Assembly (NCBI GenBank): GCA_044892525.1 | Contig: CM097888.1 | Span: 88,660,001-88,724,000, forward strand | Direction: 5' to 3' | Length of the DNA stretch: 64,000 nt | From: Schmidtea polychroa | Lineage: Eukaryota | Shown here: positions 12,101-64,000 of the stretch, one piece after another | Position numbering within the stretch: the first letter of the stretch is position 1 | How the letters are laid out: each line of letters starts with the position of its first letter | Translations under genes and position numbers: made by a program | The notes under the pieces: generated by a model | The model's input: the letters and a program-made list of their open reading frames with translations, nothing else | Told to the model about the DNA's origin: nothing | The model's database searches: none

Positions 12101-14688
12101 CCAGGTAAAATAAAATTTAAAAAAAAATAAAAAAAAATAAATAAATAAAAAAAATAAATTAAAAAAAAGTAGAATTCGGATGGAGAGGACCCTTAGCTTT
12201 TCTATATNNNNNNNNNNNNNNNNNNNNNNNNNNNNNNNNNNNNNNNNNNNNNNNNNNNNNNNNNNNNNNNNNNNNNNNNNNNNNNNNNNNNNNNNNNNNN
12301 NNNNNNNNNNNNNNNNNNNNNNNNNNNNNNNNNNNNNNNNNNNNNNNNNNNNNNNNNNNNNNNNNNNNNNNNNNNNNNNNNNNNNNNNNNNNNNNNNNNN
12401 NNNNNNNNNNNNNNNNNNNNNNNNNNNNNNNNNTCCCGATTATTTATACATGTCATGGCTGATGGATGGCGTCATACCATTTATGACAGTAAGATTAGAA
12501 ATGATGTATTAGTTTTAAAGGATTCCTAGGAAACTTTGAAAGCTCAAACGACCTCACCGGTAACGGTTACGCAGCAACAGTTGATGATAGAAAATGTCAA
12601 ACTTATCATTCAAATTTTGACAATTCTTTCACCAAATTTTTCCATTTTACACCAAATCGAAATTGCGACCGGCTATTTGTTTGCAGCGGTCTTGTCAAAC
12701 TATGAAAGATACATCAGCCTTGAACCTGTCATTGTCAAACTTAGTAGCAATGTTCGCAGTGACAGCGTCAATTCCAGGCAAACATTTAAGGAATTTCTTC
12801 AAACCCACAAAGAGGAAATAGATTTGAATCGGGAATTCAAAAACTTTCTCAATAACACTCACTCGCTTTTAGTGGGGAAAAATAGTGCAGATAGCCAGAT
12901 AAAATATCCAGGGCATCCAAACGGTAATTTATAGGTTTTTTTATAAATGCTAAGTAAAGATATCCGNNNNNNNNNNNNNNNNNNNNNNNNNNNNNNNNNN
13001 NNNNNNNNNNNNNNNNNNNNNNNNNNNNNNNNNNNNNNNNNNNNNNNNNNNNNNNNNNNNNNNNNNNNNNNNNNNNNNNNNNNNNNNNNNNNNNNNNNNN
13101 NNNNNNNNNNNNNNNNNNNNNNNNNNAAACATGCGTTCAATTATAATGTCACCTGGTGTCAAATAATAAATAAAACTGCAATATTTATTTATATATTCAA
13201 TATTTATATTCTATTTCTCATAATTATTCATTTCCCTATGAACACTGAAAATCTTTATCCATATGAATATTTTTTTCTTTATCTTCAGTAAGAATTTTCA
13301 GATCCTCCCCAAAAGCGTTTTTCTTAAATTTTAATATAATAATTTTTTTTGTATTTTTATGTTTGAATTGTCATCATAATAATTTTTTACATTCTATTTA
13401 ATTTTTCACAATTTAATATTTGAATTTTTTCACAATTTTTGGCCTCCTATAATTTATTTATACATTTAAAATCAGTATAATATAAAAAACACTGATTTTC
13501 AAAACATTTATATAGATGGGGGGACCTTCACCATTGCATTAGCGGAGGTTAAATGTCACTAAATATATAAAAAATTGTTCTGATGAAATTTTCTATTTAC
13601 AAACATTTCGTAATATAAATAAAAATCTATTTATAATCTTTTTATTAATAATTTTCAAAAAAAAAGAGTAGCAAGATAATATCTGTTCATCATCTTACTG
13701 TCACTTGAAGGGTATCCGTTTATATGTCAAGCTTTCCATATGTCAATCATTCGTACGTTTCGTAACAATTATCCAATACAATCATAATTATATTAAATTA
13801 TATTAATAATATAAAATTAAAAAATTCTGTCAATTATTCCGAAATATTTAAACAAATTAATTTGATAAATATTTCTGTATTTCTGTGACATTGTTGATTT
13901 AACTATATGATACAAGCAATTATATAAAATAAATAATTATTAATATTTTAATAATAAATTAAATATAAAGTGATAATTTAAGCCTTTTGCTGCGAATAAT
14001 GTATTTAATGAAAATATTTTCGACTATAAGATTTGTCAATTGACAAGGACTATCTTATTGTCGAAAGTTTTTTCATTAAATACATTATTCACAGTAAAAG
14101 GCTTAAATTATCACTTTATTGTTTTTATTAATAAATTTAATTAAAAATTGCTATATATAACATATATTACAGTTAAAGTTTTAAATTCAGCTAAAGTATA
14201 CAGTCACCAGTAAATGCATGCATGTGAATTTTTAGACAATAATAAGATAATAATAAAATGCACACTATATTTAGCTAAGATATTCAGTATTGCAACATGG
14301 CATACTAGAATGACTTTTATGTAATTTAAGAGAGAATGTATTCATTGTCTAAGTTTAATGGACAATGGAACTGAATGCTGTGATTCATCTATAATATATG
14401 TTTTCTTTCAGATATGTCTATTTGTCATATAAAGCAGAAATATTTAAAATAAAATTTTACTGAAATAACATCACGCAAATTTCCTTATCCTTCAACAATA
14501 AGCCCACTCAACGCTATCAAGTATCATTTGATTTAGAAACTTTCTCATTCCAAACAATTCATAAAATTATATTTTAATTATTAATTAAAATTAATTATTA
14601 CATCATTCAAAATATATAATTTAAATAATTTGCGAGTCTAAAGAATGAAATTTTTAGCAATAGAAAAATTCAGTAAACAATGACAGAA

Positions 14689-28700: not shown

Positions 28701-31700
28701 TTTAGCTGGGACATCATTGTTGTTGATTATTATTTTATAAATCCCTTTGAACATGCAAATCCAAAGTTTGCCTTTATCCCTTAAACTCACTTAAACCTTC
28801 TAAAAGCAAGAAGAAATTATAAAATAAAAATAAAAAATCAAACCATTCAAACAAGCTGTTTTTCAATTTATTTCCAAATGAAGAAAACTGTTTATTTATA
28901 TTTATTATTAAATCTCTGAACTTTTAATATGAAATATTTTCCAATATTTTTACATAAAATTTGACGGAAGTCGAATTTTTCATTGTTTTTATTTTCTCAA
29001 GAAGATATTTAATNNNNNNNNNNNNNNNNNNNNNNNNNNNNNNNNNNNNNNNNNNNNNNNNNNNNNNNNNNNNNNNNNNNNNNNNNNNNNNNNNNNNNNN
29101 NNNNNNNNNNNNNNNNNNNNNNNNNNNNNNNNNNNNNNNNNNNNNNNNNNNNNNNNNNNNNNNNNNNNNNNNNNNNNNNNNNNNNNNNNNNNNNNNNNNN
29201 NNNNNNNNNNNNNNNNNNNNNNNNNNNNNNNNNNNNNNNNNNNNNNNNNNNNNNNNNNNNNNNNNNNNNNNNNNNNNNNNNNNNNNNNNNNNNNNNNNNN
29301 NNNNNNNNNNNNNNNNNNNNNNNNNNNNNNNNNNNNNNNNNNNTTGCTCACTATCCAGTCTTAAAAATTCATATGATTTATATATCAACACTTCATACAA
29401 TATTTTCACTCTGTCTCCTCGTGGCCTATGTACTCATTTCGAAACCAGGATTCAACAATATCCGTCAATTGAAGTCCTACGTGGAAAGGTTATGCCATCA
29501 GTTGCCAGTGACGGACTCTGTCAAATCAAATAAGCACATTAAATTACTAAAAAAAGCTGAAAAACGAATTGATATGCTTCATGAAAGTGAGCAAGCTGAT
29601 GCAATAATTGAACTGANNNNNNNNNNNNNNNNNNNNNNNNNNNNNNNNNNNNNNNNNNNNNNNNNNNNNNNNNNNNNNNNNNNNNNNNNNNNNNNNNNNN
29701 NNNNNNNNNNNNNNNNNNNNNNNNNNNNNNNNNNNNNNNNNNNNNNNNNNNNNNNNNNNNNNNNNNNNNNNNNNNNNNNNNNNNNNNNNNNNTAAGCCTT
29801 TTGCTGCAAATAATGTATTTAATGAAAGAATTTTCGACTATACGATAGTCCTTGTCAATCTCCTGGAATTTAGCAATGTTCTTCTTCAAAATACCCTTCA
29901 ATCTTTCTTTTATTTCCTTTCTCTTAATTCTCATTGGTTGTAAATATAATGAATTGTTTTACTAAAAACTTTTAAAATTTTTTTATAATTTTTACATTTA
30001 AAATTTCAAAATGACACAAACTAAAATTTTTAAATTTTTTACAGCTTCTATAATTAGCTTCTAGAAGCCTAATAAAATATTTGAAAAATTTGAAAATATT
30101 TTAAATAAAGCCTCCAATAACTACTTATATATGCTATTTAAATATTTCAATAAATGTGTCAATTTTGATTTTCAAACCCTATTTTTTAAAATTTTTTTTC
30201 TATATTATTCTAATTATTACTTTTTAATTTATTCTTATTTTTTTAATTTCTTTGTATATTGTCAGTTATTCTCAAAGTCAATGACAACAGATCAAATTCA
30301 TGATTTCATTGATTTCTTCTTTAGTGTTGATCTTTGGCTGTCTGTTTATTATGAGAATTGCTTCTTTGATTCTGACATTTTTCTTTTGGATATTTCCATT
30401 AGCTATGATTTCTATTGAAATATTTTTTCTTTCCTCTGTTGGCTGACACTGCCGGAGATTGCTTTCTCTTAATTTCTTTTCTTGTTAATAAAGGAAATGA
30501 ATACCGAGAATATCACCAAACTACTTACTGTTATCCTCGAGAACACCTATTTTACCTTTGAACAAAATATCTATAAACAAGTTAAAGGTCTGCCTATGGG
30601 TTCTAGCATATCAGGACTGCTAGCAATCATCTTTATGGATAACCTCGAACGACAGACACTGAGGACCATACAACCCATCGGTTTCTATGCAAGATATGTA
30701 GATGATATCTTCATCTTGACCAAAAACAGAAAAGAAGCGGAGGAAATATTTCATTCATTCAATGCGGCTCATCAAGATATTAAGTTCGAAATCGAATATC
30801 CGGAAGAAGATGGATCCCTCAATTTATTGGATTTGAGAATCAAAATAGAAGAAAATACTCCAACATACGGGTTCTACAGAAAACCAGCTCGCAAAGAAAT
30901 ATTTATGCACCAAAGATCAGCGCTTCCATACTTACAGAAAGTACATGTCATAAGAAACGAGAAACGAAGAATAGCCAATCGATGCACGGAGAAAAACGAA
31001 AACTTTAAAGAGCAATCAAATTTCAATAAAACCCTACACCGAAACGGATACCAAGGTGAGGACATTGAAAAAATGAATTCTACCCCAAGAAGATCTAGGG
31101 AATTAACACAAAAGAATCAGAAATATTTCTATCTGAATATCCCATTCATCAGTGACATACTCGACTTCAAGATCCTGAAAGAACTTAAACGTACCGGTCT
31201 TCCAATTCGGATAGCACATAAATCTTGGACATTGAGAAGGGCTCTGGCAGGCAACATAAATAGAGAAAACAATTGCACAATGAAAAACTGCCAGACACCG
31301 AAAGATATGTGCTTTAGAAAAAACATCGTCTATTGCATCACGTGCAATGTATGCAATGAAATCTACATTGGAAGTACCCTCAGGACATTGCACCAAAGAG
31401 TTAAAGAACATCTAGATCCTGGTGGAACATCCTCGTTGGGCAGACATCTCCGGCAGTGTCAGCCAACAGAGGAAAGAAAAAATATTTCAATAGAAATCAT
31501 AGCTAATGGAAATATCCAAAAGAAAAATGTCAGAATCAAAGAAGCAATTCTCATAATAAACAGACAGCCAAAGATCAACACTAAAGAAGAAATCAATGAA
31601 ATCATGAATTTGATCTGTTGTCATTGACTTTGAGAATAACTGACAATATACAAAGAAATTAAAAAAATAAGAATAAATTAAAAAGTAATAATTAGAATAA

Positions 31701-34700
31701 TATAGAAAAAAAATTTTAAAAAATAGGGTTTGAAAATCAAAATTGACACATTTATTGAAATATTTAAATAGCATATATAAGTAGTTATTGGAGGCTTTAT
31801 TTAAAATATTTTCAAATTTTTCAAATATTTTATTAGGCTTCTAGAAGCTAATTATAGAAGCTGTAAAAAATTTAAAAATTTTAGTTTGTGTCATTTTGAA
31901 ATTTTAAATGTAAAAATTATAAAAAAATTTTAAAAGTTTTTAGTAAAACAATTCATTATATTTACAACCAATGAGAATTAAGAGAAAGGAAATAAAAGAA
32001 AGATTGAAGGGTATTTTGAAGAAGAACATTGCTAAATTCCAGGAGATTGACAAGGACTATCGTATAGTCGAAAATTCTTTCATTAAATACATTATTTGCA
32101 GCAAAAGGCTTAAATTATCATTTTATTGTTTTAAATAATAAATGCTGCTNNNNNNNNNNNNNNNNNNNNNNNNNNNNNNNNNNNNNNNNNNNNNNNNNNN
32201 NNNNNNNNNNNNNNNNNNNNNNNNNNNNNNNNNNNNNNNNNNNNNNNNNNNNNNNNNNNNNNNNNNNNNNNNNNNNNNNNNNNNNNNNNNNNNNNNNNNN
32301 NNNNNNNNNNNNNNNNNNNNNNNNNNNNNNNNTGCTTTTGACAATTCTGTTTCTTAAATGTCAAACAAAACAATATTTTATTATTTTATATTTTCCAATA
32401 ATCTCTAAGAAAAATCATTCTGTGAATTATAATTTGACATTTTTGTTTTGTTATTCACTGCCTCCTTCATGAAATATTAGCATGCCATTAAAACAAAATA
32501 TATCACGTTTTTCAAAGAATTATTATTTTCTCACTTAATTTATCCAAAAAAATTGTCCTAGGCCTTGAATTTTCCATGGTTACCATTTGGTTATTCTTTT
32601 AATTATATTAGGAGAATGTGTAAAAATATAAAAGCATTTAGAAACACGATTTAAAAAATATTTTTTGTGCCAAAGACTTTAGTAACAATATGATGGTGGG
32701 ATTGGGACCCAATTTGGGGGGTTGGCAGTAAAGAACGTTCTCTTTATCACAAATTATCCCTAGCTCAGAAATTCTCACATAATTTTGGTGAATGTATAAT
32801 TTTTACACTGAATAGATTTTATTTTTGATTTTGTCACGCTGCCATAATGAAACTTTTATTTTACAGCACAATTATTCCTATTCTTAAGCAGAAAGCGGTG
32901 AAATAAGTCTTTATATCATTTTGAATAATTTACCCTTGAGCAAAGGCTTCTTACTTACACTGTATGTTCTGTTACCGCATCAACATAGCAAGTCCTACCT
33001 TCTTCATTTTGTTGGCCGTCTTGGTACATCAAAGTCGAAATGATGAAGCATACAGTTGACATTCATAAAGGGAAAAATTCCTTCACATTTACCAGTCAAG
33101 GATTATAAATGTAATAATAATAATACATCAGAAACTTTAACAAACCTTTGAACAATCAATTACAATCATAGAGCTTATGACACCTTTTTATGTTATCAAA
33201 AGAACCTCTAAGTCACCTTGTGGTGAGTGTGTGGCAATATTTTGAGAAGTCGGGGAAATGTTGTAGACTTTTTAATGCAAGCCCTTTCCTGTAAATATTG
33301 GACTCCATTGAAATGGCGCATTTTCGGATGTGAGCCAGAATTGCGGAATGAATTATGATTGGATAATTCAATCTAAATGCGGTAGACAGAGAGATCTTAG
33401 CGGACAGAAACCTTTGGACATTGTCAAGGAAATTAAATAAATATTGATGAATATTATGAAATTTGGAAAATAGATTTCTAGTGAAATATTTTTCACTTTT
33501 CCCAACAAATGACATGTTTTAAGTATTGATACAAGGATTAGGTACCTCCCCTCTCTCATCTGTGATCACAAATTTCAGAATAATTGTAGAAAATAGTCGT
33601 TAAAAATGCAAACCAAATTATATTTATATTTATATTTATATTTTTTGTTTATATTTATGTAAATTTTTTTTACGGATGTCTAACATTAAAATAATATAAA
33701 CATTACAAGCTTTGTGATACCCAGTGCAAATCCCAATAGTAGACTAGTTTCGAGATTTTGGCTCTCATCAGCAGGATTTTCTCTTCGCGCCAGGTAAGTA
33801 TACAATATTGCTGATTCAACTCTATTGCATACTTTACCTGCTACACTGGAAATCACATCACTTGCAAATTAGCTTGGTCAGAGAAAAAATATCATATTGG
33901 CGTATGAAAATCATATTCACCTCTGGAGACACAATCTATACACAGAAACTGTTTACAAGTGCATCCGTAAACCTTTAGCATTTTTAACTTGTAATGGTGT
34001 AAAATTTGTTTTTTACGGATGTCTAACATTAAAATAATATAAACATTACAATAAATATTTCTGTTTATATTTATATTCATATTTATATTTATATTTATAT
34101 AATAAATATTTTTAATTATTAAATAATTTTGTTTATATTTATATTCATATCTATATTTATATTTTTGTTTATATTTATATCTATATGTATATTTATATTT
34201 AATGTTGAAAATAGATTCAAAAAATTTCAACTTAGATTTTATTTTAAAAAATAAAATCAATTTTTACAAGAAAATTTTGACACGAAAATTTTATTGATTT
34301 GGAAATTTTGTTAATCAATTCTGCGCAGATCAATCAATAATGTCATCGGGAGAATCGTTTTATTGATTAGTGCAATTTATTTACAAATTTCACCCGATGC
34401 CCCCTCACTGCAAATTCATAATGGAAATATTTTTTTGTTTTTATTAAAATTCGGGAAAAATATAAATTATATAGAATTTTGTTTAATCATTTGATATATA
34501 TATATATATATATTTATATTTTTTTAAATTAATTTTTATATTTAAATTTTTATATTTTTTTATATTTTTAATATAACATTTTCGTTTTTACTTTTTGTTT
34601 ATTTTAATAATTAAATATTTTTATAATTTTATATATATATTTTTATATTTAGAAAGAAAAATAGAACAGAAATCCTCCACCAACTTGGCTAATTCCAATG

Positions 34701-36198
34701 AAGCTGAGGATGATACCAATGCCAACAATCATGGAAAGAATAAACTCAATGCGAACGTTTTTAGTTTAAGATCAGTGTATTATTTCTTGTTCTTTTTGTC
34801 ATCTTTACTTGGAACAATATTCGGTGCATATGCAACCCAGATAACCGGATCTGACAAGTTCTTGGTGGCATATTACCTTTTTGCGTTTCATTTAATAAAT
34901 ATCGCACTTGTTGTCACGGATTTAACAGGAGTTTTTCAAGCGGTTAGGCAGAGTCGTAAGTTTTTTTATAATATCTTCATATATGTATAATATATACTTA
35001 ATAAATAATTTAGTTCCTTCAATGGCATGGGTCGGTCTGTTGATATTAATCATCATTTATGCGTTCACATTGGTGATATTCGTACTGTTCCGTGATGCAA
35101 TGAACATGTCCTCAAATCTCTACTGCGATACGCTTGGCCATTGTTACACGACTTTGATACGCTTTGGATTCATTTTTGATAAATGGATGGAGGTAAGCAA
35201 AAGGATTTATATAATTTACTTGTTATTATGTCGGCCTATACCACAAATTTAGCCATTGCTGTTATAGAAATTTGTGGATTCGTTTGTAAATTGTAAATTC
35301 AGCCAATCAAATTAATTCTAATTGCGCTTGTCGAGCGTTTCTTTTCTTTCCTTTATTATGACATCCATAAAAATATGTTGCAAAAACAGTTTCATTTATT
35401 CCTTACACTTAATCTTTATAAATGATAGTCATTATATAAATAACTAGCTGCCCTATCCGGCGTAGCTCAGGCACATAAGTCATATAGCAAATTGCTATAT
35501 TTTATTAAATGCACTTGAATTTTCAAAAGTAATTCTACATCGTAAATATATATTACATGTAATAAGCATGTGAAAATTAAAAATTCTTTGTTTTTCTCTG
35601 TGGTGCAAAGATGTAGAGGATTTTTTGAGTATCCGGTTGTAGGGTTTCGTTTGCTCTTACGGTAGCAGCCCGAGTTATAACCCCAGCCAGTCTTGTTGCT
35701 GCTGTGGGGTTTTATTTGACCTCTGATTTGCTGCTCTTTTAGCAGAAGAATTAACAGATTAAATTAGTATTTGTCTTTTAGATAATATTATAAGGGAAAG
35801 GAAATTTATTACAATATAGTGATTTTTAAATGATTCAGGGTTTTCTATATATAATAATAAAGATCTAAGTTTTTATATCTATAGATTATAATAGTAAACA
35901 GATAGACAGATACAGTTTTATACATTGCAAGGCATGATGCTTAACGTTAATGTAATGGAATAACGCAAATGCTGACTTCTTAGAGGAATAAATAGCGTTT
36001 GGCTAATTGAAATTGAGTAATAACAAGTCGGTGATGACCATAGTGGCAGTAACAGCGAGTTTAATTCCCAGCTAGAAATGGCCGCTTAACCTGCTAAATC
36101 ACTGTCGTGTCAGGAATAGTGGATTGGAATTATTCCACTTAAACAAGGAATTCCTGATAAGCGCAAGTTACTAACTTGCACTGATTACTTCCCTGCCT

Positions 36199-36231
<33 letters not shown>

Positions 36232-38244
36232 AGATCGTTGGATTTTGATTTAAGGAATGGCAAAATTTCTATAATTGGTAGAAAACAATCAAACTTGATC
36301 ATTTAGAGGAAAGAAAAGTCGTAACAATGTGAATAATTAGACAAAAATTAAAATACTACATTACCGGATTACATTAGTGCTGATCTGAATTGAGCATGCT
36401 TAACCTAAGAATTTATATTTGACAAAGTGATTTTTTTGTAATAATAACGATTTATAAGGATTTTATATTGGATTCAATTTAAAAATTTCCGTATTTAGAA
36501 ATTGTAACAAACATACATACACACATTCACAATTATATATAAGATGGACGTAATTAACACAGGAAGCCTAGTTAGCATTACATTGTTTATTCGAGTTTCT
36601 TTTACCTATCATTAAAATCTTAAAACTTTTCATCATTCATATTTATAACGATTTAATTTATCTTCATTCATTCAGACTGTTAACCAAGAGGGTCTCTTAT
36701 TTTACACACCAATATATTGTCTGAAATATTTACAATTGCATATTATTTTACATGATTTAAATTACATTTTGAAATAGTTATTCGTTCCTCAATTCGATTC
36801 GAAAAAGAACTTTGTAAGTGTGGTATATATGAGCATTTTCACCGTAATGCTCTGCATTATCGTGGCCATTATAATGCTCAACATCATAGCTGGTATCATT
36901 GTGGACAAGTTTGCAACTGCTCGTAATCTGAAGGTAAATTATGTTTTTATTTATTATTTGCTGACTAATTAAAATTAATTTAATTTCATCAAAATTCAAT
37001 GGATAAAAGTTAAATAATATTTGGGAAAAATAACGTATTTATTCTCCCAGAACCTTTAAATTCACTGTCCATTTTCCAGCCTACAATCAGACCAAAGCCA
37101 AACGTGATGCAAGGAGTGTAAAGGGGGGGGGGAGTGGAAAATAGTTTAGTGAAGAAATGCTAATTGTCCAATCTTTATTACGTTCATTATGGCTCCAACC
37201 TACTGCTTATTAATTAAATAGGTAAAACTTGTATATTATATACTTATGTAAATAAATAAATACTACAAAAAAATACGTCATTCGTAACAATGTTAGTATT
37301 AAGATATTATTTTGCAAGCATTGCTCCGAAAAATTTAAAACGATGATTAATATTATTTAAATAAACAAGGTAAAGATTTTATTGATAAAAATCGCCATTC
37401 GTACATCTTTTTCACTATATATTTCGATAGCATCACTATCATCATCATCAGCTTACCTACAGTCACGACGGATGAATAACTATACAATATTGATAATTTA
37501 TAAAGAAATTATAAAATCTTGAAATTTTTTATAAATTTTTTAGAAGGTAATTAGAAATATGCATCCTATAATTTATATTCCCAACCCTCCGTTATAAACA
37601 AACGGTGACAAAGATCAAGGAGTTTTCAATTTAAAAAATGTATTAAAGGGAATGTGAATTTTAGGTAAATTGTTTAAAGTATAACGTGTTAAGGGATGAA
37701 GTAACTGTTAGTGTCACAGATTTTCAATCCTTTTTGCAGCAGAGCACTATTTTATATTCTTCGCAAATGCGAAGCCTTAATATTAAAATGAGTTTAAAAT
37801 AACAGATATTAACACCACACATTTATTTTGAGTTGTTACATCAACAATTTCAGAAATTGTAAAGTTTTAAGGAGAACCTTGGTACATTGCAAACCGCTGG
37901 TTTATGTAATAAAGGGATGTTTCTATCTATATAGATGATATATTTTATTTAAAAGTAAATAAATTTAAAGTTAATATAGAATTTCCCCATTGGTCAGGGT
38001 TCATCCAATAAGCAATGAGATTAATAATTCATAAATAAATAATTTATAAACGTTGATCAGTTATAATCTAATAATTGTTATAAATCAGCTGTAAATTAAG
38101 TCAAAAATAAAATCATTTTTATTTACTTTTAATTAATTTAACAATATTTAATAAAATAAAATAATTGAACTATAGTATAAAAAAAGTTAAAATATATTAA
38201 AAAAATATACTGAAATATTATAAATTTCTTTAGAAAAAGGAAGA

Positions 38245-45195: not shown

Positions 45196-45555
45196 TGAAA
45201 ATATAAATGATAAAAACAAACTATTCATTAATTCGTGTTCAGATAATTACCTCCCAGACATAAATTTAATAATTTCTTATTCGCAATAATACCAATTTCC
45301 GATCTAGGCTCAACAGACAGGGAATTAGTAAACAATTATGATCTGGGAAACTCTCAATTGAGAGTGAAATTTCATAGAATAAACAATTTATTTATTTATT
45401 TGAAATATAACAAAGTATATAATGGAATAATTGTAATAATATATATATATATATATATATATATTCTTCAGTTTTCACCATTGATTTGTTTTCAATTGAC
45501 ATTTATTAAAAGGCTTGACAATGAATCAGTAAATATGTCGATGTGTTTTTGATAT

Positions 45556-45588
45556 TCACGAATTTTCGGCACTGCCTTTTTCAAGTGA
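45556..45588 (-). ncRNA. Predicted minimal hammerhead ribozyme, family B (U3-A8 core), intact
   Basis: UCAC-UUGAAAA-A-GGC(AGU)GCC-GAAA-AUUC-GUGA. Confidence 0.7.
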
Positions 45589-48500
45589 TTTTCAAGAAAA
45601 TAAAATCATATAAAATAATATCAGTAAATATATTAATTACAAGATAATTGAACTCAAAACCTGAATTACAATAAAATGTATACCATGCTATACCAATCAT
45701 AAACATCAAATAAACTTTTTATAAGATAGTAATATTTTAATAAAATTTTAATAAAGTAAATATTTCCCACAAAGCTACAAAACTTAATGAATAACTTTTT
45801 TTTTAATATTTCCTTCTCGCCTCAATTGTTGGTGTCTATGTGAGACATTCACAAATCACATTTGACTGGTATACCCTTTGGTCTAAAGGCATTGACCATC
45901 ACATTTAGTACACAAACCTTTCTACCTGCAAATGTGTCATTCAACCCAATCACATAATTCGAGCTATCGTACAACAATAAAATATATATAAAATATATAT
46001 AAAATATATATATAAAATATATTTTATTATAAGATATATTTAAAATAAAATTTCACAAATCTACTATTTTAAACTGCAATAATTATTCTAATGAAATTTT
46101 CTACAATTTATTCGACACTCATTTTGTTGTTTACTCTATCATGTTTTGCAATTATTTACCTTTTATTTGGATATCAAACTTTTCATTGGGAATGCATTCG
46201 TACATTACTATTTTAAAATTAGGAAATACTATTTATCTCGTCTAAAAAAGTCACATTATCATTTGACTTTANNNNNNNNNNNNNNNNNNNNNNNNNNNNN
46301 NNNNNNNNNNNNNNNNNNNNNNNNNNNNNNNNNNNNNNNNNNNNNNNNNNNNNNNNNNNNNNNNNNNNNNNNNNNNNNNNNNNNNNNNNNNNNNNNNNNN
46401 NNNNNNNNNNNNNNNNNNNNNNNNNNNNTAAAAATATAATAAAATATAAAATTAAGGACCTATTTTGCCCAAGTACGAATATCAATTCAATACCAACAAA
46501 TGTAAGTATTCTCATTCCTGGTGGTGTCATTGAAAGAATAATTATTTCCTAGATGATAACCTTCAATCCTCGAGAATCATTCAACGAAGATGATGAAAGA
46601 ACTGAAAATTTGAATCTCTAATCTGTCAAAAATTAACATTTCGAATCTCTTTTTGTCATATAATTATATTTCTTGATACAGTTGAAATGCAACTTGTAAC
46701 TTGGGTGATATTTTCCCCATTATTATTTTCATTTTTATTTTTGTTTATTACATTTTATTTTGTTAATCTCTCATTTGAGGATTTTCCTTACGTGCCAATT
46801 TGAAAGTGATTGGAAATTTAATATAGAATTTTGTAAAAAAATTACACAATCGACCCAAAATATACATTAATATTTTTTGGAAACCATTTATTTCGGGACA
46901 CAAATTTAATATGTAATAGTAAGACATAGAGGCAGACATTAAGACAAGACAAGCGACAAAATTACAATAACAATGTTTTGAGGGACAGGCCGGAAGAAAT
47001 TATTAAAGATTTTACAATTACGAATTCTAAGGTGATAAAATATAAAAAAAAAAATAAACCAATTTGTATACCTAAAGATTATAATAAAAGTTGCAAAAGC
47101 AATTGTATTCATCATATCCGGTAAGGAAAAGGTATATCATGTATCAATGTGTAACACGTTGCATTGTCGGACGAGTAAAAGAAAACGGATAGTAAACACA
47201 GACTGATATTAACCAAACTTTACTGAAATACACCTTTTACAATATAAGAAAAAAGTCAACAATGTTATAATATAGAAACATGATGTTATTCATTGCAAGT
47301 GCAATGTGATACACTTTACACTGTAGAAACTGAAAAAGTGTTATAAAAATTAAATACTGCACACAAACACAGCACATACTAAGATATGTATGCAAATTTA
47401 CAATATGCATTTATTACCCAATGAGATACACTCCTATAATAACTTTATCTAACTTTGACTATAAATTGCAAAAAATTGAGTTTCCGTGAAAATGAGGAAA
47501 TATTGTCGTAAGATTTATTTTAAAGTTAAAATTAATTTAGTATTTCCTTAGCATTTCAAACATTTCTGTCAAAGCCCTTCCATTTCGCGAAAGTGAAAAG
47601 ATAATATTTAAGATTAATTTATAAGTTATAATTAATATATAGATTAATTATTTTTTAAATAAATAATTGATCTAACTTACTTTTAATTGAAATATTTCCA
47701 CAAATAAAATAAAATACTTTCTGAAAATGTAAAAAAAATTAAAAATAAAATGAGTGAAAGCGATTGATTTATGAAAAAAATTATCTATTACGTTTAATTG
47801 TATTAGGAAGAGTATCTCAGTAGAGTTTGATGTGTATGCATTTGTCTAACTTACAATTGGCTGCAAGAACTCATTTGGTTGACCAATTACAAGTGTTAAC
47901 CACATTTTATGTGTTTATAGCAAATTCAATTTGGAAATGGTGTAATTTATTTATTTTTAGAACACAAATAAAAGTAATTTTTGTATTTATTTTTTGTTAA
48001 TTATCACTGGTGAATACTTTGTCAAAGGAAATATAGTTTTATATAAATATTGTTCATTGGTGTAGATCAGGTAAAGCTTTGTATATACCATGACACTAAT
48101 GAACAGATTGTCCAAACTAATAGTACAGAAAGAACCACTTTGAGGGTACTTGGGATTCAAAGCTTGAAAGAAATTTCCCCTGCTACTTTCAATTAAAAAT
48201 TGAAAATAAAAAATGTAAATTATATTGTTTGAAATGAAATAAAATTGAAATAAAAATACATTTAGGTAAATGAAGATGCGTTTTAGTAACATGAATTGAG
48301 ATTAATTAAATACAAATAAATGCAGGATATCATATTTCTATTGTCATTTGGTAAAAGATTATTTATTTTCTTAGTGACAATGGCTTACATCCCTAACAGG
48401 TATTATTATACCTATTATGCAATTGAAAGGGAAATATATATTAAAGAACTTCACTAGTCTAATTGGACCATGAGCTGTGACAAATATAGCTCTCCTTTGA

Positions 48501-48652: not shown

Positions 48653-50417
48653 CAGGGCATGCNNNNNNNNNNNNNNNNNNNNNNNNNNNNNNNNNNNNNN
48701 NNNNNNNNNNNNNNNNNNNNNNNNNNNNNNNNNNNNNNNNNNNNNNNNNNNNNNNNNNNNNNNNNNNNNNNNNNNNNNNNNNNNNNNNNNNNNNNNNNNN
48801 NNNNNNNNNNNNNNNNNNNNNNNNNNNNNNNNNNNNNNNNNNNNNNNNNNNNNNNNNNNNNNNNNNNNNNNNNNNNNTAGATTTTTTTTTAATTAATGAA
48901 TATTTTTTTTTAATTGATGAGTATTATTTTTTAATCGATGAATATTTTATTTTAATTAATGAATGTTTTCTGTGAACCCTTTATGGACCAACCAACTTGT
49001 ATACCGGACAGAAGGTCCAAAAATATCTCAGATGAAAAACGTCTTGATATAATTCAAGCGTTAGAAGGTGGGAATCTTACTCGTACTTCGGTAGCCAAGA
49101 CATTTAATGTGTCATATTCGAGTGTAGTGAAGATATATGGGGATTTTTGCAAAACGGGCAAAGTTGAAAAATTAAAGGTAGGTGGAAGGAAACCAAAAAA
49201 GTTATCTGTGGAAAACATAACGTTTATAAAAGATTTGTTGCTTGAGAATTGCAGTTTAACCCTAAATGAAATCAAGTTAAAAGTATTCGAGAGGTTTGCA
49301 GTGTCGGTATGCGAGGCAACAATATCGAGTTATATTGAAAGTTTCAATTTTTCATTTAAGAGAATTTCAAAGATTTCAAATGCAGCAATTACAGAGACAT
49401 TGGTTGCAGAACGAAGAACATACAGTAGCTGGTTCCTCGACAAAGTAAATGAAGGGAAAAAATTTCTATTCTTTGATGAAACAGGTTTCCAAGTAACAAT
49501 GAGGAAACATTATGGAAGATCAAAAAAAGGGAAGAAGGCCATTGAGATAGCTCCAGGAATCAAATCAAGAAATAAAACCGTTATGGCTTGTATGTGGAAA
49601 GGCGGGCTAATCCATTATGCAGCTTTAAATACAGCTGGAAATCGAGTTTCTCGTTTGGAATTCACGGAAACACTATGTGAAATTTTAACTTTTGAAAACT
49701 TAACGAATGTGACAATAATTATGGATAATGTCTCATTTCATAAGTGTAGTGAAATTTCAACCTTTATTGAATCGAAAGGACACCAAATCAAGTTTCTACC
49801 ACCCTATAGTCCATTTTTCAGTCCCATTGAATTCATGTTTTCTCAATGGAAAGGTATTGTAAGATCACGAAAACCAAATACTGATGTCGAGCTTTTGAGA
49901 ATTATCGATGATTTTAAAAACATCCTAACGGTAGAACAATGCGAAAATTATGTGAGGCATGTTACAAACAATATTATAAAATGTTTGGGTGGTATAAATG
50001 TATTCGAGGAATAAATATTTTCATTTTAACTTTATTTATTTACCGAATCTTGTTGGTTTATCGTTAATATACATTTTACTCGTGTTTACAAAAATGAATT
50101 CAAAATAAATATTTTTATAAATATTCATCAATTAAAAAAAAATATTCATAAATTAAAAAAAAACACTCATAAATTAAAAAAAAATCTATTNNNNNNNNNN
50201 NNNNNNNNNNNNNNNNNNNNNNNNNNNNNNNNNNNNNNNNNNNNNNNNNNNNNNNNNNNNNNNNNNNNNNNNNNNNNNNNNNNNNNNNNNNNNNNNNNNN
50301 NNNNNNNNNNNNNNNNNNNNNNNNNNNNNNNNNNNNNNNNNNNNNNNNNNNNNNNNNNNNNNNNNNNNNNNNNNNNNNNNNNNNNNNNNNNNNNNNNNNN
50401 NNNNNNNNNNNNNNNNN
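48653..50417 (+). mobile_element. Tc1-like transposon with long TIRs built from about 20-bp subrepeats
   Basis: 48878-48945 is inverted relative to about 50120-50190; TA|CAGGG at 48651 and TA right after the right gap; outer TIRs lie in N-runs. Confidence 0.7.
48959..50014 (+). CDS. IS630/Tc1-mariner transposase, DD34E, intact ORF
   Basis: N-terminal HTH, FFDETGF, IMDNVSFH, LPPYSPFFSPIE; 34 residues counted between D2 and E. Confidence 0.93.
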   Translation: MNVFCEPFMDQPTCIPDRRSKNISDEKRLDIIQALEGGNLTRTSVAKTFNVSYSSVVKIYGDFCKTGKVEKLKVGGRKPKKLSVENITFIKDLLLENCSLTLNEIKLKVFERFAVSVCEATISSYIESFNFSFKRISKISNAAITETLVAERRTYSSWFLDKVNEGKKFLFFDETGFQVTMRKHYGRSKKGKKAIEIAPGIKSRNKTVMACMWKGGLIHYAALNTAGNRVSRLEFTETLCEILTFENLTNVTIIMDNVSFHKCSEISTFIESKGHQIKFLPPYSPFFSPIEFMFSQWKGIVRSRKPNTDVELLRIIDDFKNILTVEQCENYVRHVTNNIIKCLGGINVFEE

Positions 50418-59030: not shown

Positions 59031-59200
59031 CAATTTCAACACTGATTATTTTTTCCATTGAATTAAAAAGAGAGCTGGAAGACTATAAATCAATAATATA
59101 TCAATGTTTGTTGATGCTCAAGAATTTTTGGCACTGCCTTTTTCAAGTATCAACAAACATCGATATATTACTGATTTATAGTCTTCAAACTCTCTTTTTA
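59031..59200 (-). repeat. Second copy of the family B hairpin element, core with G12>A
   Basis: Same arms and same junction as 2920-3078; core at 59122-59146 reads GCC-AAAA-AUUC. Confidence 0.75.
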
Positions 59201-59509: not shown

Positions 59510-61279
59510 TTACAAATTGAAAGCATTTTGTAAAATTGGTTTAATATTCCCTTCGAATTTTCTTTTTACATTCTCTAAATCAGCGATTTCAGCGTACGAA
59601 TATTTCGCGAACCATTCAATGATTTCGTTGACTGATTCTTTCAAAATCTTCAAGTCAATTTGTGATTTAATTCTGCTAATAAAAGTGCTATTCTGTAAGA
59701 TGTGGCCCCGAATTTCATACGCAATGTTCTCGATTTCTTCACGAATTTCGTACGCGATTTCTAAATTTCGATCTTTTTCATTCATCTGCTCATCATTTGG
59801 CATAGAATTTTGTTTGCTATTTAGTTTTTGGAAGTTCTTGTGGATAATGATTTGCCTTTGTAACTTGGTTTCCAAGTCTGTGGCAGTCACAAAAATGTAT
59901 CCATTCGATTTCACTTCTATTTCTATATTGAATAGTATTATCCCCCTCAATCCCGTTGGAGGTCGACGAAATTCAATTTGTCCAAGAAAAGTATTTCGTC
60001 TTGCAATAAGTTTGTTCCCTTCCAATACGTTTATGATTATTTCACTTTGATTGTCAAAGGTCAGGGTAAAGGTCTTTGATTTTTTAATTGGAAGAACTAA
60101 ACCTCTTTCAGCGATCACTTGAGACATCGAACCGAAGACCTCAATGCGTATGTCCTTATATAAAATATCTGGTAGAACGACATAATTAATTTGGTCTTCT
60201 TTACGGAACTGCAGCCCAATTTTAGCAATGCCTCTTACTGGGGCCTCGTTGAAACCGTTTTCCGATCTCAACTCATGATTATAGAAGAAATTTTGAATTT
60301 CCTTTTGTAGTTTTGGTATGCTAAATGAAGATCCTAACAATACGATTTGAGCTATATCCGAGCGTTTTAACTCGATCTCCTTCAGGAAACCAATTAAGGT
60401 TTTCTCCAACTCAAATATTGTATCGGAAATGAGTTCATCATATTTTGCTCGAGTAATCTGAATGACTTCCTCAACATCAACTCCTATAGAATTCCATCGA
60501 AATTCGCTCAAATAGGAAGTGGTTAAGTGAGCTTGTAAATATTCGACTTCTCGTTTCAAATGGAAGATATTTTTCTTATTTTCTAATTTTCTTTCTGTCA
60601 TTCTTTGATATAAAAACAACAGATAGCCTTCTAGGGCCCCGCTAAATTTCATTGAGCCATAGTTACTGATAAAGTGCGTACCTATTACTTCCTGGCCATT
60701 TTGATCACACGAAACCATTACTAAATTTGTGGATTCTTCACCAATATCAATGACCAATACGTTTATGTCCTCTTCGGTTTCATTTATCTCGTACGAATAT
60801 ATTGCCGAGATTGCGTCTCTACTGGACTTTACTACTCGAAACCCTGCCATATTAGCAGCTGCTTTAATGGAAAACAATTGAGATTCGGAGAATTCGTCTG
60901 GAACGGTAAGTGCTATCGAGGAAACATTGGAATTTAGGAAGCCTTCAGCACTCGTTTTTAAATACTTAAATACGTAAGTTAAAATCTCCTCAATTGTCAA
61001 ATACGTCAAATCCTTCATTTTAGTCTTAATGTATGGCTTGTTGTATTTGTTCTTGATTTTAAACCGAAATGGGTATTGTTTCATAGAAACTATTTCACTG
61101 AAGGTCTTTCCAGCCAAATATTGCAAACCATCTATGAGAATTAGAGGACTTGAACTGTATCTGGCCTCCTTACCTATTAGAACTTTATCATTCTCGCTGA
61201 AACCAACAAGAATTTGAGTTTTCAATTCTCCTATTGAATTTGGGATTAAATCCGAACTTTCGTGGTCACAAAGAGACAT
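59510..61279 (-). CDS. Highly divergent Hsp70-family protein
   Basis: IALTVPDEF, AAANMAGFRV, VLVIDIG, IVLLGSSFSIPKLQ, INVLEG, GLRGI; N-terminal DLGTT motif not found. Confidence 0.88.
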   Translation of the reverse strand: MSLCDHESSDLIPNSIGELKTQILVGFSENDKVLIGKEARYSSSPLILIDGLQYLAGKTFSEIVSMKQYPFRFKIKNKYNKPYIKTKMKDLTYLTIEEILTYVFKYLKTSAEGFLNSNVSSIALTVPDEFSESQLFSIKAAANMAGFRVVKSSRDAISAIYSYEINETEEDINVLVIDIGEESTNLVMVSCDQNGQEVIGTHFISNYGSMKFSGALEGYLLFLYQRMTERKLENKKNIFHLKREVEYLQAHLTTSYLSEFRWNSIGVDVEEVIQITRAKYDELISDTIFELEKTLIGFLKEIELKRSDIAQIVLLGSSFSIPKLQKEIQNFFYNHELRSENGFNEAPVRGIAKIGLQFRKEDQINYVVLPDILYKDIRIEVFGSMSQVIAERGLVLPIKKSKTFTLTFDNQSEIIINVLEGNKLIARRNTFLGQIEFRRPPTGLRGIILFNIEIEVKSNGYIFVTATDLETKLQRQIIIHKNFQKLNSKQNSMPNDEQMNEKDRNLEIAYEIREEIENIAYEIRGHILQNSTFISRIKSQIDLKILKESVNEIIEWFAKYSYAEIADLENVKRKFEGNIKPILQNAFNL

Positions 61280-62311
61280 TCTAGGAGGTAATTAATTGAA
61301 AATTGTTGAAAATAACAGCAAAATTAATAATTTTTATAATTTTGCAAATTTGTGGTAGAATCACAAATCTAGCCTCACTCCCTGTGATCTTTAATTATGA
61401 ACAAAATATTCAACAAATAACAAATTTTATTTTCCCCTAAAATTACACAAAGTCTGAGGAAATTTGACAGTTGATTTCAATATAAACATTAATCAAACGA
61501 AGGCTCTTAAAGGTAATCTACTTTCTTGGGAATCGATGTTTTATACACTATTTCCAAATTTAATTCGCTATAAGCAGGAAAATGAGAACACTGTCTGATG
61601 ATTGCATACACACACAATTATTAGGGACATACATTCTAGATCACTAGGCAAAAGTGAAATACAACCGATGCTATGCATAAACATCATGATGAAAAATGAG
61701 CACACGGTTTTGAGTTTATTACGTATCGGTGAATTTCCTATGATACCAAGAAAAATGTTAATCCAAAATATGTCCAAATTGTCTACTTGGTGTATCAATG
61801 TTTCCCAGCCATATTTTTATTCTGCCCAACTTAAGTATTTTTATAATTCTAATCTTCCCATCTAACATACATAATTTTTTTATGGGAAAAAAAATCCTAT
61901 ATGACAATTTGTTAAGGACACAGCATTTAGGATTTAGAAAGAAATTGGGATATTATAAGAAAAAAATGAAATTTCAAAACACATAATAGAGAACTGAAAT
62001 TGAATTACAAAATAATTTTGATAAAGTTACTATACTGCATTGCTCATTTTTAAATTGCCCACCAGTGGGGCGCGGGACCCACCTTGGGAATCGTTGCGTT
62101 AGATAATTCACAAAACCTGGATTATTCTTACGCTAATAATAATTTCCCTTTATAAATCTCACTTAGTATAAATCTGCTTTTAAAAATTTTAATTTGAAAC
62201 GAAATAAATTATATTAAAATATTTTATATAAATTGATAATTATTTTAACGTTTATTTTAAAATTATTATGAAATTAATAATTATAAAATAACGTCAATCA
62301 AACATTCTTTT

Positions 62312-62350
62312 CGCGATATCTTTCGACAGTTTTCCTGTCATCATCAGGTG
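62312..62350 (-). ncRNA. Predicted hammerhead, family C (canonical CUGAUGA core, extra U after A9)
   Basis: CAC-CUGAUGA-U-GACAG(GAAAA)CUGUC-GAAA-GAUAUC-GCG. Confidence 0.7.
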
Positions 62351-62765
62351 GGATATAATAACTCATTAAATTAAGGATTTTAAACAAATTTATTAATTAT
62401 ATAAAAACTTTTTTATTTAATAAAAACATTTAATTATTTTGATAAAATTTGATAATTATTGGTAACGCGTGATTTGTGAGGCGTTATTGATAAAGTCATT
62501 GAATCCGAAAATTAATGTGCAGAATGCAGTGAATACTTGTATTTTAAATGTTTTTAAATAATGTTTTTCTTGTATATTGTATGTATTTGATTGTTGTGTT
62601 AAATTAAATAATTAATAAATTTATTTTAATTATTAAATTAAATTCTGAATGCTAAAATTTTAAAAATAATATATTAATTTAATTATAATTTTTAAAAATA
62701 ATTAAATGTTTTTATATAATTAATAAATTTGTTTAAAATCCTTAATTTACATAGTTATTATATCC

Positions 62766-62804
62766 CACCTGATTATGAAAGGAAAACTGTTGAAATATAT
62801 CGTG
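62766..62804 (+). ncRNA. Hammerhead family C, decayed partner copy
   Basis: CAC-CUGAUUA-U-GAAAG(GAAAA)CUGUU-GAAA-UAUAUC-GUG. Confidence 0.55.
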
Positions 62805-62889
62805 AAAAGAATGTTTGATTGGTGTTAATTAAATCATTACCATGTATGTTTAACTATTTATTCAAAAATTAATAATTGTTACAATATTT

Positions 62890-62945
62890 ATTAAAAAGCT
62901 TGACGATTATGAATCAGTAAATATATCGATATTTTTGATATTTAC
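62890..62945 (-). repeat. Family B downstream segment without the ribozyme core
   Basis: Similar to 45500-45559. Confidence 0.6.
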
Positions 62946-64000
62946 AATTATTTTAACGAAAATATTAAAATTAGTATAAATTTAATATTCAATAACAAAA
63001 ATATAAAAATTTTTAAAAAACTGTATTGAACATTAAGTAAAATTAAATAAAAAAAGAAAGTGCCGTTTATAATTTGTTTATACCGGTAGTACCGGACTTT
63101 TTTGAAGTACCGAAATACCGGTATTGGTTTGGCTCAATATCGGTATTTCCGATATTTCTGCTAAAATATAAATTCAACAGTAACAGTAATATTAAAGGAG
63201 ACTTGTTGTGATTAGAAAACATTAATCACACAAATCAATTTTCAATCTCATCATGAGACATACAAGTTGAAAATAGACATTTCTAATTTTGATGTTTTAT
63301 CTAAAGGTTTCAAAAACTATTGAGATCTCATTGCTAATGAGGCTTTGATTATTAAATTATTTAACTGAAAAATCAATATACAAAATGCATTATTTGTCAT
63401 TGGATTCCGCACATTTCATTACGTAATTACTAATAAACTTCTAAGTATAATCGTTTATATTGAAATTGTTTAGTGCTTGATGATCACAACCAAGTAGTCG
63501 GAATTTATTGCAAAATTATATTTAAAAATTATTATTCGTTTATTTAATAAAATTAATTAATAATTATAATAACGTCCAAAATTTCTCACTGTTATAGAAT
63601 TCGAATGAAGAATTAAGATTAAGCGAAAAGATGCCAAGAACAACATAATAATTAATCCTTTACTCTGTGTAAAATATTGCAAATACACCCTCTAGGCAAA
63701 ACCTGCACAACATACTGCTCGTGAAAGATTTCTAGAAATCTCCTAAAAACTCAGAAGCCATTGATATCAAGGGCAATAATTGAGGCTGAAGGATTATTTT
63801 TAATTACCTATTCGGCCGCAACTATTTTCCTTGAAAATTTTGGCCCTCGACGCTTCTTACGTTGTTCAGGCCAGCTCTAGGCTAATAGAAGGTAAAAAAT
63901 ATTTGCTGAATTGGATGCTATTTGGGATAGTTGTTACTAACATTTTGATAATATTTTACGGAAATCGGTGAATTTGAGTGCCTTGAAGGCCTTGAAATAA

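Follow-up and report, generated by a model that had tools for sequence, protein, structure and literature searches.

Putative minimal hammerhead motifs with a U3-A8 core in the tails of two probable Penelope-like element lineages of Schmidtea polychroa

The DNA analysed here, called the window below, is a 64,000-nt stretch of Schmidtea polychroa (GenBank assembly GCA_044892525.1, contig CM097888.1, positions 88,660,001 to 88,724,000, forward strand). It is AT-rich eukaryotic DNA with 27% GC and 21 runs of N. Two repeat families within it, family 1 and family 2, carry a short motif resembling the minimal hammerhead ribozymes of Penelope-like elements (PLEs), with a U-A pair at core positions 3 and 8 where C-G is usual. 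The C3-G8 pair of the hammerhead tolerates Watson-Crick exchanges to varying degrees. We describe the copies of both families, compare their motifs with those of related elements, and weigh what the motifs may be. Coordinates are collected in Table 1.

Penelope-like elements and their tails in the window

The intact family 1 motif lies approximately 415 nt 3′ of the end of an open reading frame (ORF) with reverse transcriptase and GIY-YIG endonuclease domains. Its letters are GAGA, UUGACAA, G, a 6-bp stem with a CGU loop, GAAA, AUUC and UUUC. Read as a type-I hammerhead, they give a helix I of 4 bp (GAGA/UUUC, including one G-U pair), the core UUGACAA, and a 6-bp helix II that begins with G10.1-C11.1, followed by GAAA and by the palindrome AAUU, which replaces helix III. 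An identical motif is found on the opposite strand, as the inverted arms of the element (29793-30459 and 31446-32112, 667 nt) are perfect, with 100% complementarity. No direct terminal repeat was seen in this copy, which is 5′-truncated and meets a run of N at both ends.

The ORF piece of the same copy is broken once, by the 5′ truncation, and what is retained contains neither an internal stop nor a frameshift. Its translation matches RVT_1 (4e-11) and GIY-YIG (6e-6), carries a Cys pair placed between GIY and YIG, with a Cys-rich linker upstream, and keeps all 45 of the 45 alignment columns that are invariant among 26 relatives. Most of its 227 homologues (E<=1e-5) also carry RVT_1, GIY-YIG or PF26215, the best being ~42% identical. 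By the criteria given in PMC8557442, the family 1 element classifies as a C-terminal endonuclease-bearing (EN+) PLE, nearer to Neptune/Nematis than to Penelope/Poseidon. With its identical arms and uninterrupted ORF piece, the copy is judged to be very young. The decayed head-to-head pair of tails at 13965-14136 is read as a second, older insertion of the same family.

Family 2 follows the same plan with different letters in helices I and II, and with an extra A instead of the extra G. On the minus strand, 45556-45588 reads UCAC, UUGAAAA, A, GGC-AGU-GCC, GAAA, AUUC and GUGA, with C17 at 45560. A preliminary description, made from the letters of the window, had quoted the motifs at 32043-32081(+) and 45556-45588(-), and both are exactly as it gave them, with C17 at 32077 and 45560. 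It had also listed family 2 copies at 2985 and 59146. In the former, the motif at 2979-3015(+), core and stem II are intact, and stem I is a 3-bp makeshift because the inverted arm abuts the motif. The latter lies on the minus strand (59114-59152), differs from the invariant core at one position and reaches only 11.1 bits with the covariance model described below.

The four copies of family 2 share a common 3′ part, differ in their 5′ cut-offs and include inverted 5′ duplications, which on sequence grounds is the signature of PLE-type retro-copies and not of a DNA transposon. Tandem head-to-tail copies, as in retrozyme-type arrays, were not found in the window, where runs of N beside two of the copies hide part of the context.

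One further observation concerns both families. In the family 1 pair (14039/14040) and in the family 2 foldbacks (2983/2985 and 59146), the primary copy ends at, or at most one base from, U3. Primary copies truncated at this point are without the 5′ strand of helix I, and the truncation point is not the hammerhead cut site. That two families are truncated at one motif position may be a coincidence.

Table 1. Elements, motifs and covariance model (R1) matches in the window.
Feature	Positions	Strand	Details
5′-truncated Penelope-like element, visible part between two runs of N	29793-32149	+	Inverted 5′ arm, unique middle, 3′ arm with tail
PLE ORF piece	30482-31627	+	381 codons: C-terminal part of reverse transcriptase, Cys-rich linker, GIY-YIG endonuclease
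Family 1 minimal hammerhead motif	32043-32081	+	U3-A8 core, extra G after A9, 6-bp helix II, AAUU helix III, C17 at 32077
Identical family 1 motif copy	29824-29862	-	Within inverted arm
Decayed head-to-head pair of family 1 tails	13965-14136		Motif 14034-14076(+) retains U3-A8 core
Family 2 copy	45480-45590	-	Motif 45554-45590 (U3-A8, extra A, 3-bp helix II, 4-bp helix I) and tail ending in a (TA)n run
Family 2 foldback	2909-3087	+	Inverted tail arm, motif 2979-3015, then tail
Family 2 foldback between two runs of N	59031-59200	-	Motif 59114-59152 decayed, one departure in invariant core
Family 2 tail-only fragment	62886-62949	-	5′-truncated downstream of motif
Family 3 head-to-head inverted pair	62286-62830		PLE-type minimal hammerhead, C3-G8 core; arms 62286-62444(-) and 62672-62830(+)
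R1 match	45554-45590	-	31.1 bits, E 1.4e-7
R1 match	2979-3015	+	24.4 bits, E 3e-5
R1 match	32041-32083 and 29822-29864	+ and -	21.6 bits, E 3e-4
R1 match	14034-14076	+	20.6 bits, E 6e-4
R1 match	59114-59152	-	11.1 bits

Motif statistics and comparison with relatives

The pattern UUGANAA-N(7-31)-GAAAAUUC occurs 4 times in the window, against 0.27 expected. A full descriptor, devised after the motifs had been seen, combined a helix I and a helix II, each of 3 bp or more, with the core, 0 or 1 extra base, GAA, an A...U palindrome and H17. There were 4 matches, against 0.043 expected from 300 dinucleotide-preserving shuffles of the window, none of which contained 2 or more; when stem I was left out, the expectation of the loose descriptor rose to 0.5 per window. 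The 4 matches represent two independent families, not four independent events. Because of this, and because the descriptor was shaped post hoc, independent evidence was sought from relatives.

An alignment of 27 sequences, built from the homologues of the ORF at 30482-31627, led to 80 PLE loci on metagenome contigs, and these were scanned with the descriptor, positions 3 and 8 being left fully free. On the ORF strand 28 matches were found, all of them 3′ of the ORF match; the 2 matches on the other strand both belong to inverted copies. From an alignment of 19 distinct motifs, out of 19 unrelated metagenome PLE loci, we then built a covariance model, R1, in which zero window sequence was included. 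When the full length of the window was scanned with R1, filters off, the motifs of families 1 and 2 took ranks 1 to 5, with E-values from 1.4e-7 to 6e-4 that are rough owing to a shortened calibration. Matches at 60269, 20984 and 40101 (E 0.007-0.04) were rejected as chance, as they proved on inspection to be without helix II.

Applied to the 80 loci, R1 recovered 51 motifs, of which 42 are distinct; matches share the strand of the ORF and stand 26-430 nt downstream of its match. None of the 42 lacks a base between A9 and G10.1 (U 24, A 9, G 6, C 3), so that the extra base, which the preliminary description took to be a purine, can be any of the four. G10.1-C11.1 is found in 39 of the 42, and the core is kept at U4 (40), G5 (40), A6 (42), A9 (42), G12 (39), A13 (42) and A14 (41). 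Position 17 is U or C throughout, and helix III consists of a palindrome of 4 or 6 nt. The 3-8 pair, for its part, is C-G in 31 motifs, A-U in 4, U-A in 2 (L028 and L062), G-C in 1 (L070) and U-G in 1, and is unpaired or gapped in the remaining 3.

Double changes were seen at all 9 of the 9 modelled pairs, and 92% of the cells were paired, as against 19-39% for slid partners (the stems having been in part pre-selected, see below). The covariation score was 0.53; with shuffled partners it was 0.15, and with slid ones it did not exceed 0.08. Helices I and II and the 3-8 pair thus covary among the 42 relatives' motifs, and this Watson-Crick covariation supports the predicted fold among the relatives. 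The extra base is also found, together with C3-G8, in the minimal hammerheads of three more relatives (L081-L083), which come from genome or TARA assemblies.

Families 1 and 2 agree with the core of this subclass at U4 G5 A6, A9, G12 A13 A14 and H17, and have in addition a compensated 3-8 pair (U-A), the extra base, G10.1-C11.1, the AAUU palindrome and a short helix I. As far as sequence features go, all of them fit the minimal PLE hammerhead, and a model trained on relatives only picks the motifs out. The preliminary description had called them true ribozymes, which is an overstatement for the truncated relics of the window.

The families had also been called unrelated, which does not hold up, as family 2 too is most probably a PLE tail. 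The motifs of L001, L024 and L058 share with it helix I (UCAC/GUGA), N7 and helix III; they carry C3-G8 and lie downstream of the ORFs that, among the fetched loci, have the top identity to the window ORF (42-44%). A further relative on an AT-rich contig, L062, has the same flanks as family 2 and also U3-A8. The motif and tail of family 2 align to L062:1465-1613, 3′ of the PLE ORF match, over 161 columns with 63% identity (E 9e-5). We conclude from these comparisons that family 2 is most probably a PLE tail, and that the change from C-G to U-A within its group reads as a clean compensatory swap on a conserved background.

Departures from C3-G8 recur elsewhere in the sample, where environmental lineages have A3-U8 or G3-C8 fixed, with compensated stems. 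In the A3-U8 lineage (L002/L035, L012, L015 and L017), four distinct sequences have different, compensated helices I and II, and judged by these the lineage looks maintained rather than decayed. A full-text literature search of incomplete coverage found U3-A8 in one hammerhead paper (PMC4209133), A3-U8 in none, and G3-C8 in one paper, as an engineered variant only. The two U3-A8 relatives, L062 (GC 0.29) and L028 (0.33), have the lowest GC of the 80 loci, whose median is 0.41, and the window with its two U3-A8 families stands at 0.27. Base composition may perhaps steer the core, PLE lineages in AT-rich hosts repeatedly swapping C3-G8 for U3-A8; this is a tentative suggestion, built on 2 loci and this window.

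Weighing of the explanations

With a probability of about 0.85, we read families 1 and 2 as minimal type-I hammerhead motifs from two PLE lineages whose master copies probably had U3-A8 in place of C3-G8. U3-A8 is present at 32047 and in both arms at 14040 for family 1, and at 2985, 45584 and 59146 for family 2. Since copies of each family that were inserted independently share it, it must already have belonged to the transposing lineage and did not arise by later decay.

Several points weigh against this reading. No family 2 ORF was found within the window, and none adjoins any of the 4 copies. In the decayed copies of family 1, 30/34 and 26/35 positions of the motif were kept, compared to 41/45 and 43/45 of the tail. 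The family 1 helix I has an alternative register, involving C17, which is 0.6 kcal/mol more stable: minimum-free-energy folding of the monomer agrees with the motif for family 2, and returns this competing register for family 1, while cofolding gave an intermolecular duplex in which the helix III dimer was not singled out. The Rfam hammerhead models gave no match at family 1 or family 2, either at the gathering threshold or at E<=10. Minimal PLE hammerheads cleave poorly in vitro (PMC4209133), and in the Anolis PLE the cleavage is protein-assisted, requires the 3-8 pair and is dispensable for insertion in vitro (PMC11167929). Finally, the stems of the relatives were partly chosen by a descriptor that asks for pairing, so that only the 3-8 pair, the extra base and G10.1-C11.1, which were left free, count as unbiased observations.

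Two of these points lose weight on closer consideration. With Rfam release 15 at E<=1, no hammerhead was found in ten relatives (L001, L004, L014, L024, L058, L015, L028, L070, L033 and L059), all of which carry clear PLE minimal hammerheads, mostly with canonical cores. Since canonical-core relatives are missed too, the failure of Rfam to find families 1 and 2 says little. Both families escape Rfam and CUGANGA searches, as had been foreseen for the latter. As for conservation, the preliminary description had proposed that core positions should be better kept than their flanks. Among the dead copies of the window this is so for family 2, whose motif keeps 29/29 and 27/29 positions between copies, against 53/73 and 49/70 for the tail, and is not so for family 1, where a motif kept no better than the tail in the old pair fits neutral decay after insertion. 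Window copies are a poor test of this kind because inserted copies decay neutrally; the comparison between lineages is the valid one.

Of the other explanations, the one that survives best, although we consider it unlikely, is that the fold is kept as a structural or protein-binding 3′ element of PLEs, or as a passenger, cleavage being weak or irrelevant and the swap being tolerated without catalytic selection. The low activity in vitro speaks for it (PMC4209133), as do the hammerhead mutants of PAc, the Poseidon element of Anolis carolinensis, in which the loss of catalytic positions left insertion in vitro unaffected and for which RNA-seq showed no ends at the cut site (PMC11167929), and the Naiad PLEs, which thrive without hammerheads (PMC8557442). 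On the other hand, positions required for catalysis are kept in nearly all of the 42 relatives, with neither G nor A ever at position 17, and where the 3-8 pair differs, it is nearly always through compensated changes (38 Watson-Crick, 1 wobble, 3 other). Why a pure binding site should call for such a pattern is not obvious.

It appears improbable that family 2 is a foldback DNA transposon, or one of the miniature inverted-repeat (MITE) type, with a central loop that is hammerhead-like by chance. The copies at 2909-3087 and 59031-59200 are indeed foldbacks, whose inverted arms are long and which have their inner junction in common, but those at 45480-45590 and 62886-62949 share the 3′ part and are cut at different 5′ points, as retro-copies are, and family 2, with its two foldbacks and its two copies cut differently, does not have uniform termini defined by terminal inverted repeats. 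Inverted 5′ duplications are moreover a hallmark of PLEs, whose insertions often carry an inverted, 5′-truncated partner copy, and the (TA)n in which the copy at 45480-45590 ends is a preferred PLE target (PMC8557442). The R1 E-value of 1.4e-7 for the family 2 motif and the alignment of motif and tail 3′ of the PLE ORF in L062 argue in the same direction.

Less probable again is post-insertion decay, by which two GC-to-AT transitions would have turned C3-G8 hammerheads into U3-A8 ones, the genome being very AT-rich. In its favour, each change is a transition that raises the AT content, the window has 27% GC, and of the 80 loci the two U3-A8 relatives have the lowest GC. Nevertheless, U3-A8 is common to the independently inserted copies of both families, young copies retain the motif's remaining G and C positions, and the family 1 copy at 29793-32149 is itself very young, its arms being 100% identical and its ORF piece uninterrupted. 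That AT-rich DNA should yield such motifs by mere chance is barely credible: the U3-A8 core and GAAAAUUC are AT-rich strings, and the loose descriptor is not rare, but with stem I the 4 matches exceed the 0.043 expected, the motifs lie in a PLE tail, and the E-values of an independent model are significant.

If families 1 and 2 derive from hammerhead-bearing PLE lineages, the literature suggests how the motifs of active elements would work. Two motif copies in a multimeric or read-through element RNA would join by their AAUU palindromes, giving an extended helix III, and cleavage would be expected 3′ of C17, between 32077 and 32078 in family 1 and between 45560 and 45559 on the minus strand in family 2. 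It would probably be slow, aided by the element protein, and would trim multimeric or read-through transcripts. The copies in the window, which are 5′-truncated, inverted-duplicated, solitary or decayed, are best read as relics rather than as working ribozymes, and would not be expected to act. In a transcript across 29793-32112, for instance, the 667-nt arms would presumably fold on each other instead of forming the motif.

Known systems, neighbouring features and significance

Minimal hammerheads were described in PLE terminal repeats by Cervera and de la Peña in 2014 (PMC4209133). Their architecture comprises a short helix I, a long helix II, a conserved base that separates position 9 from position 10.1, G10.1-C11.1 and a palindromic 15.2-16.2, with predicted dimers, and U3-A8 covariation was reported in the Cercyon PLEs of Schistosoma mansoni, with ~1,300 genomic hits. 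The motifs of the window resemble these metazoan examples, Cercyon included, in their location in a PLE terminal repeat or tail, in the 4-bp helix I, in the 6-bp helix II (family 1), in the unpaired base between 9 and 10.1, in G10.1-C11.1, in U3-A8 for C3-G8 and in the loopless palindromic 15.x-16.x, which implies action as a dimer. They differ in that the host is another one and more AT-rich, that helix II of family 2 has only 3 bp, and that the copies are truncated relics. There is no difference in kind. The class was published in 2014, as were the dimer architecture, the extra base and the swap to U3-A8, and the motifs of the window are further examples. The preliminary description had presented them as non-canonical, with an inserted base; swap and base are real, but their novelty is not, the base being the norm in metazoan PLEs and the U3-A8 covariation being already in that paper.

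PAc also has a PLE-borne type-I hammerhead in its repeat region, and there the 3-8 pair is a functional Watson-Crick pair, as a double mutant partly rescues cleavage (PMC11167929). The PAc hammerhead differs in having C3-G8, in overlapping the start of the ORF and in cleaving only with the element protein. The viroid hammerhead of De la Peña and Flores (2001), as cited in PMC4209133, likewise has a single additional base, unpaired, at the 5′ end of helix II, between A9 and G10.1; as presented there, it is of type III, from a plant viroid, with a stable helix III and no link to a retroelement. Animal retrozymes of the non-LTR type, which are non-autonomous derivatives of PLE pseudo-LTRs (pseudo-long terminal repeats) (PMC7229834; bioRxiv 10.64898/2026.07.22.740005), are alike in being ORF-less repeats with a PLE-type hammerhead, and family 2 may represent such retrozyme-like ORF-less repeats. 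Retrozymes nevertheless occur in tandem arrays and have fuller type-I hammerheads, whereas the family 2 copies are dispersed, single, and truncated or foldback. The Rfam model RF00163 (Hammerhead_1) describes the same ribozyme class and type-I topology, without coverage of the minimal subclass.

The preliminary description had suggested that the variant core may be the norm for some Penelope lineages of this genome. A third family in the window keeps C3-G8, and U3-A8 is therefore not universal in this genome. The arms of the family 3 pair are 159 nt long and 84% complementary, contain the extra base and have decayed at different sites. The pair adjoins the family 2 tail fragment at 62886-62949, which suggests clustered or nested PLE insertions.

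Other features of the window were noted in passing. At 33730-33777(-) there is a hammerhead-like type-I motif with a canonical core, made of CUGAUGA, a 5-bp helix II, GAAAC, the palindrome ACUAGU and a helix I with an internal loop. It scores 16.7 bits with Rfam Hammerhead_1 (E 0.46, below gathering), is single-copy in the window and folds no better than shuffles (z -0.12). Just upstream of it, at 33786-33798(-), lies atacttacctggc, which perhaps resembles the 5′ end of U1 small nuclear RNA; Rfam gives no U1 match there. A fragment of eukaryotic 18S ribosomal RNA (3′ part, with internal deletions) at 36023-36327(+) reaches the Rfam gathering score in two pieces, and is isolated from any ribosomal DNA unit in the window. 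Two uninterrupted ORFs were also found. One, of 589 codons at 59510-61279(-), belongs to the Hsp70 family (Pfam 4e-65) and is very divergent, with one relative at 84% identity and the rest at 27% or less. The other, of 351 codons at 48959-50014(+), encodes a Tc1/mariner-type transposase with DDE_3 and a paired-box-like DNA-binding domain, its closest relatives being 62-74% identical.

For ribozyme biology as such the motifs are of little consequence, the features of the class having been known since 2014. Their use is rather in annotation: Rfam and CUGANGA scans miss the subclass, which a small covariance model with a covarying 3-8 pair finds cleanly, and the Rfam misses point to a coverage gap of public models for the PLE minimal subclass. 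Should base composition indeed steer the core, the 3-8 pair of natural, probably protein-assisted, minimal hammerheads could be any Watson-Crick pair, and searches and models that fix C3 and G8 would systematically undercount such ribozymes. In the environmental sample, which was blind, about one in six of the distinct Watson-Crick-paired PLE hammerhead cores is other than C-G, with U-A in the most AT-rich DNA, and this share bears on the real freedom of the hammerhead core in nature.

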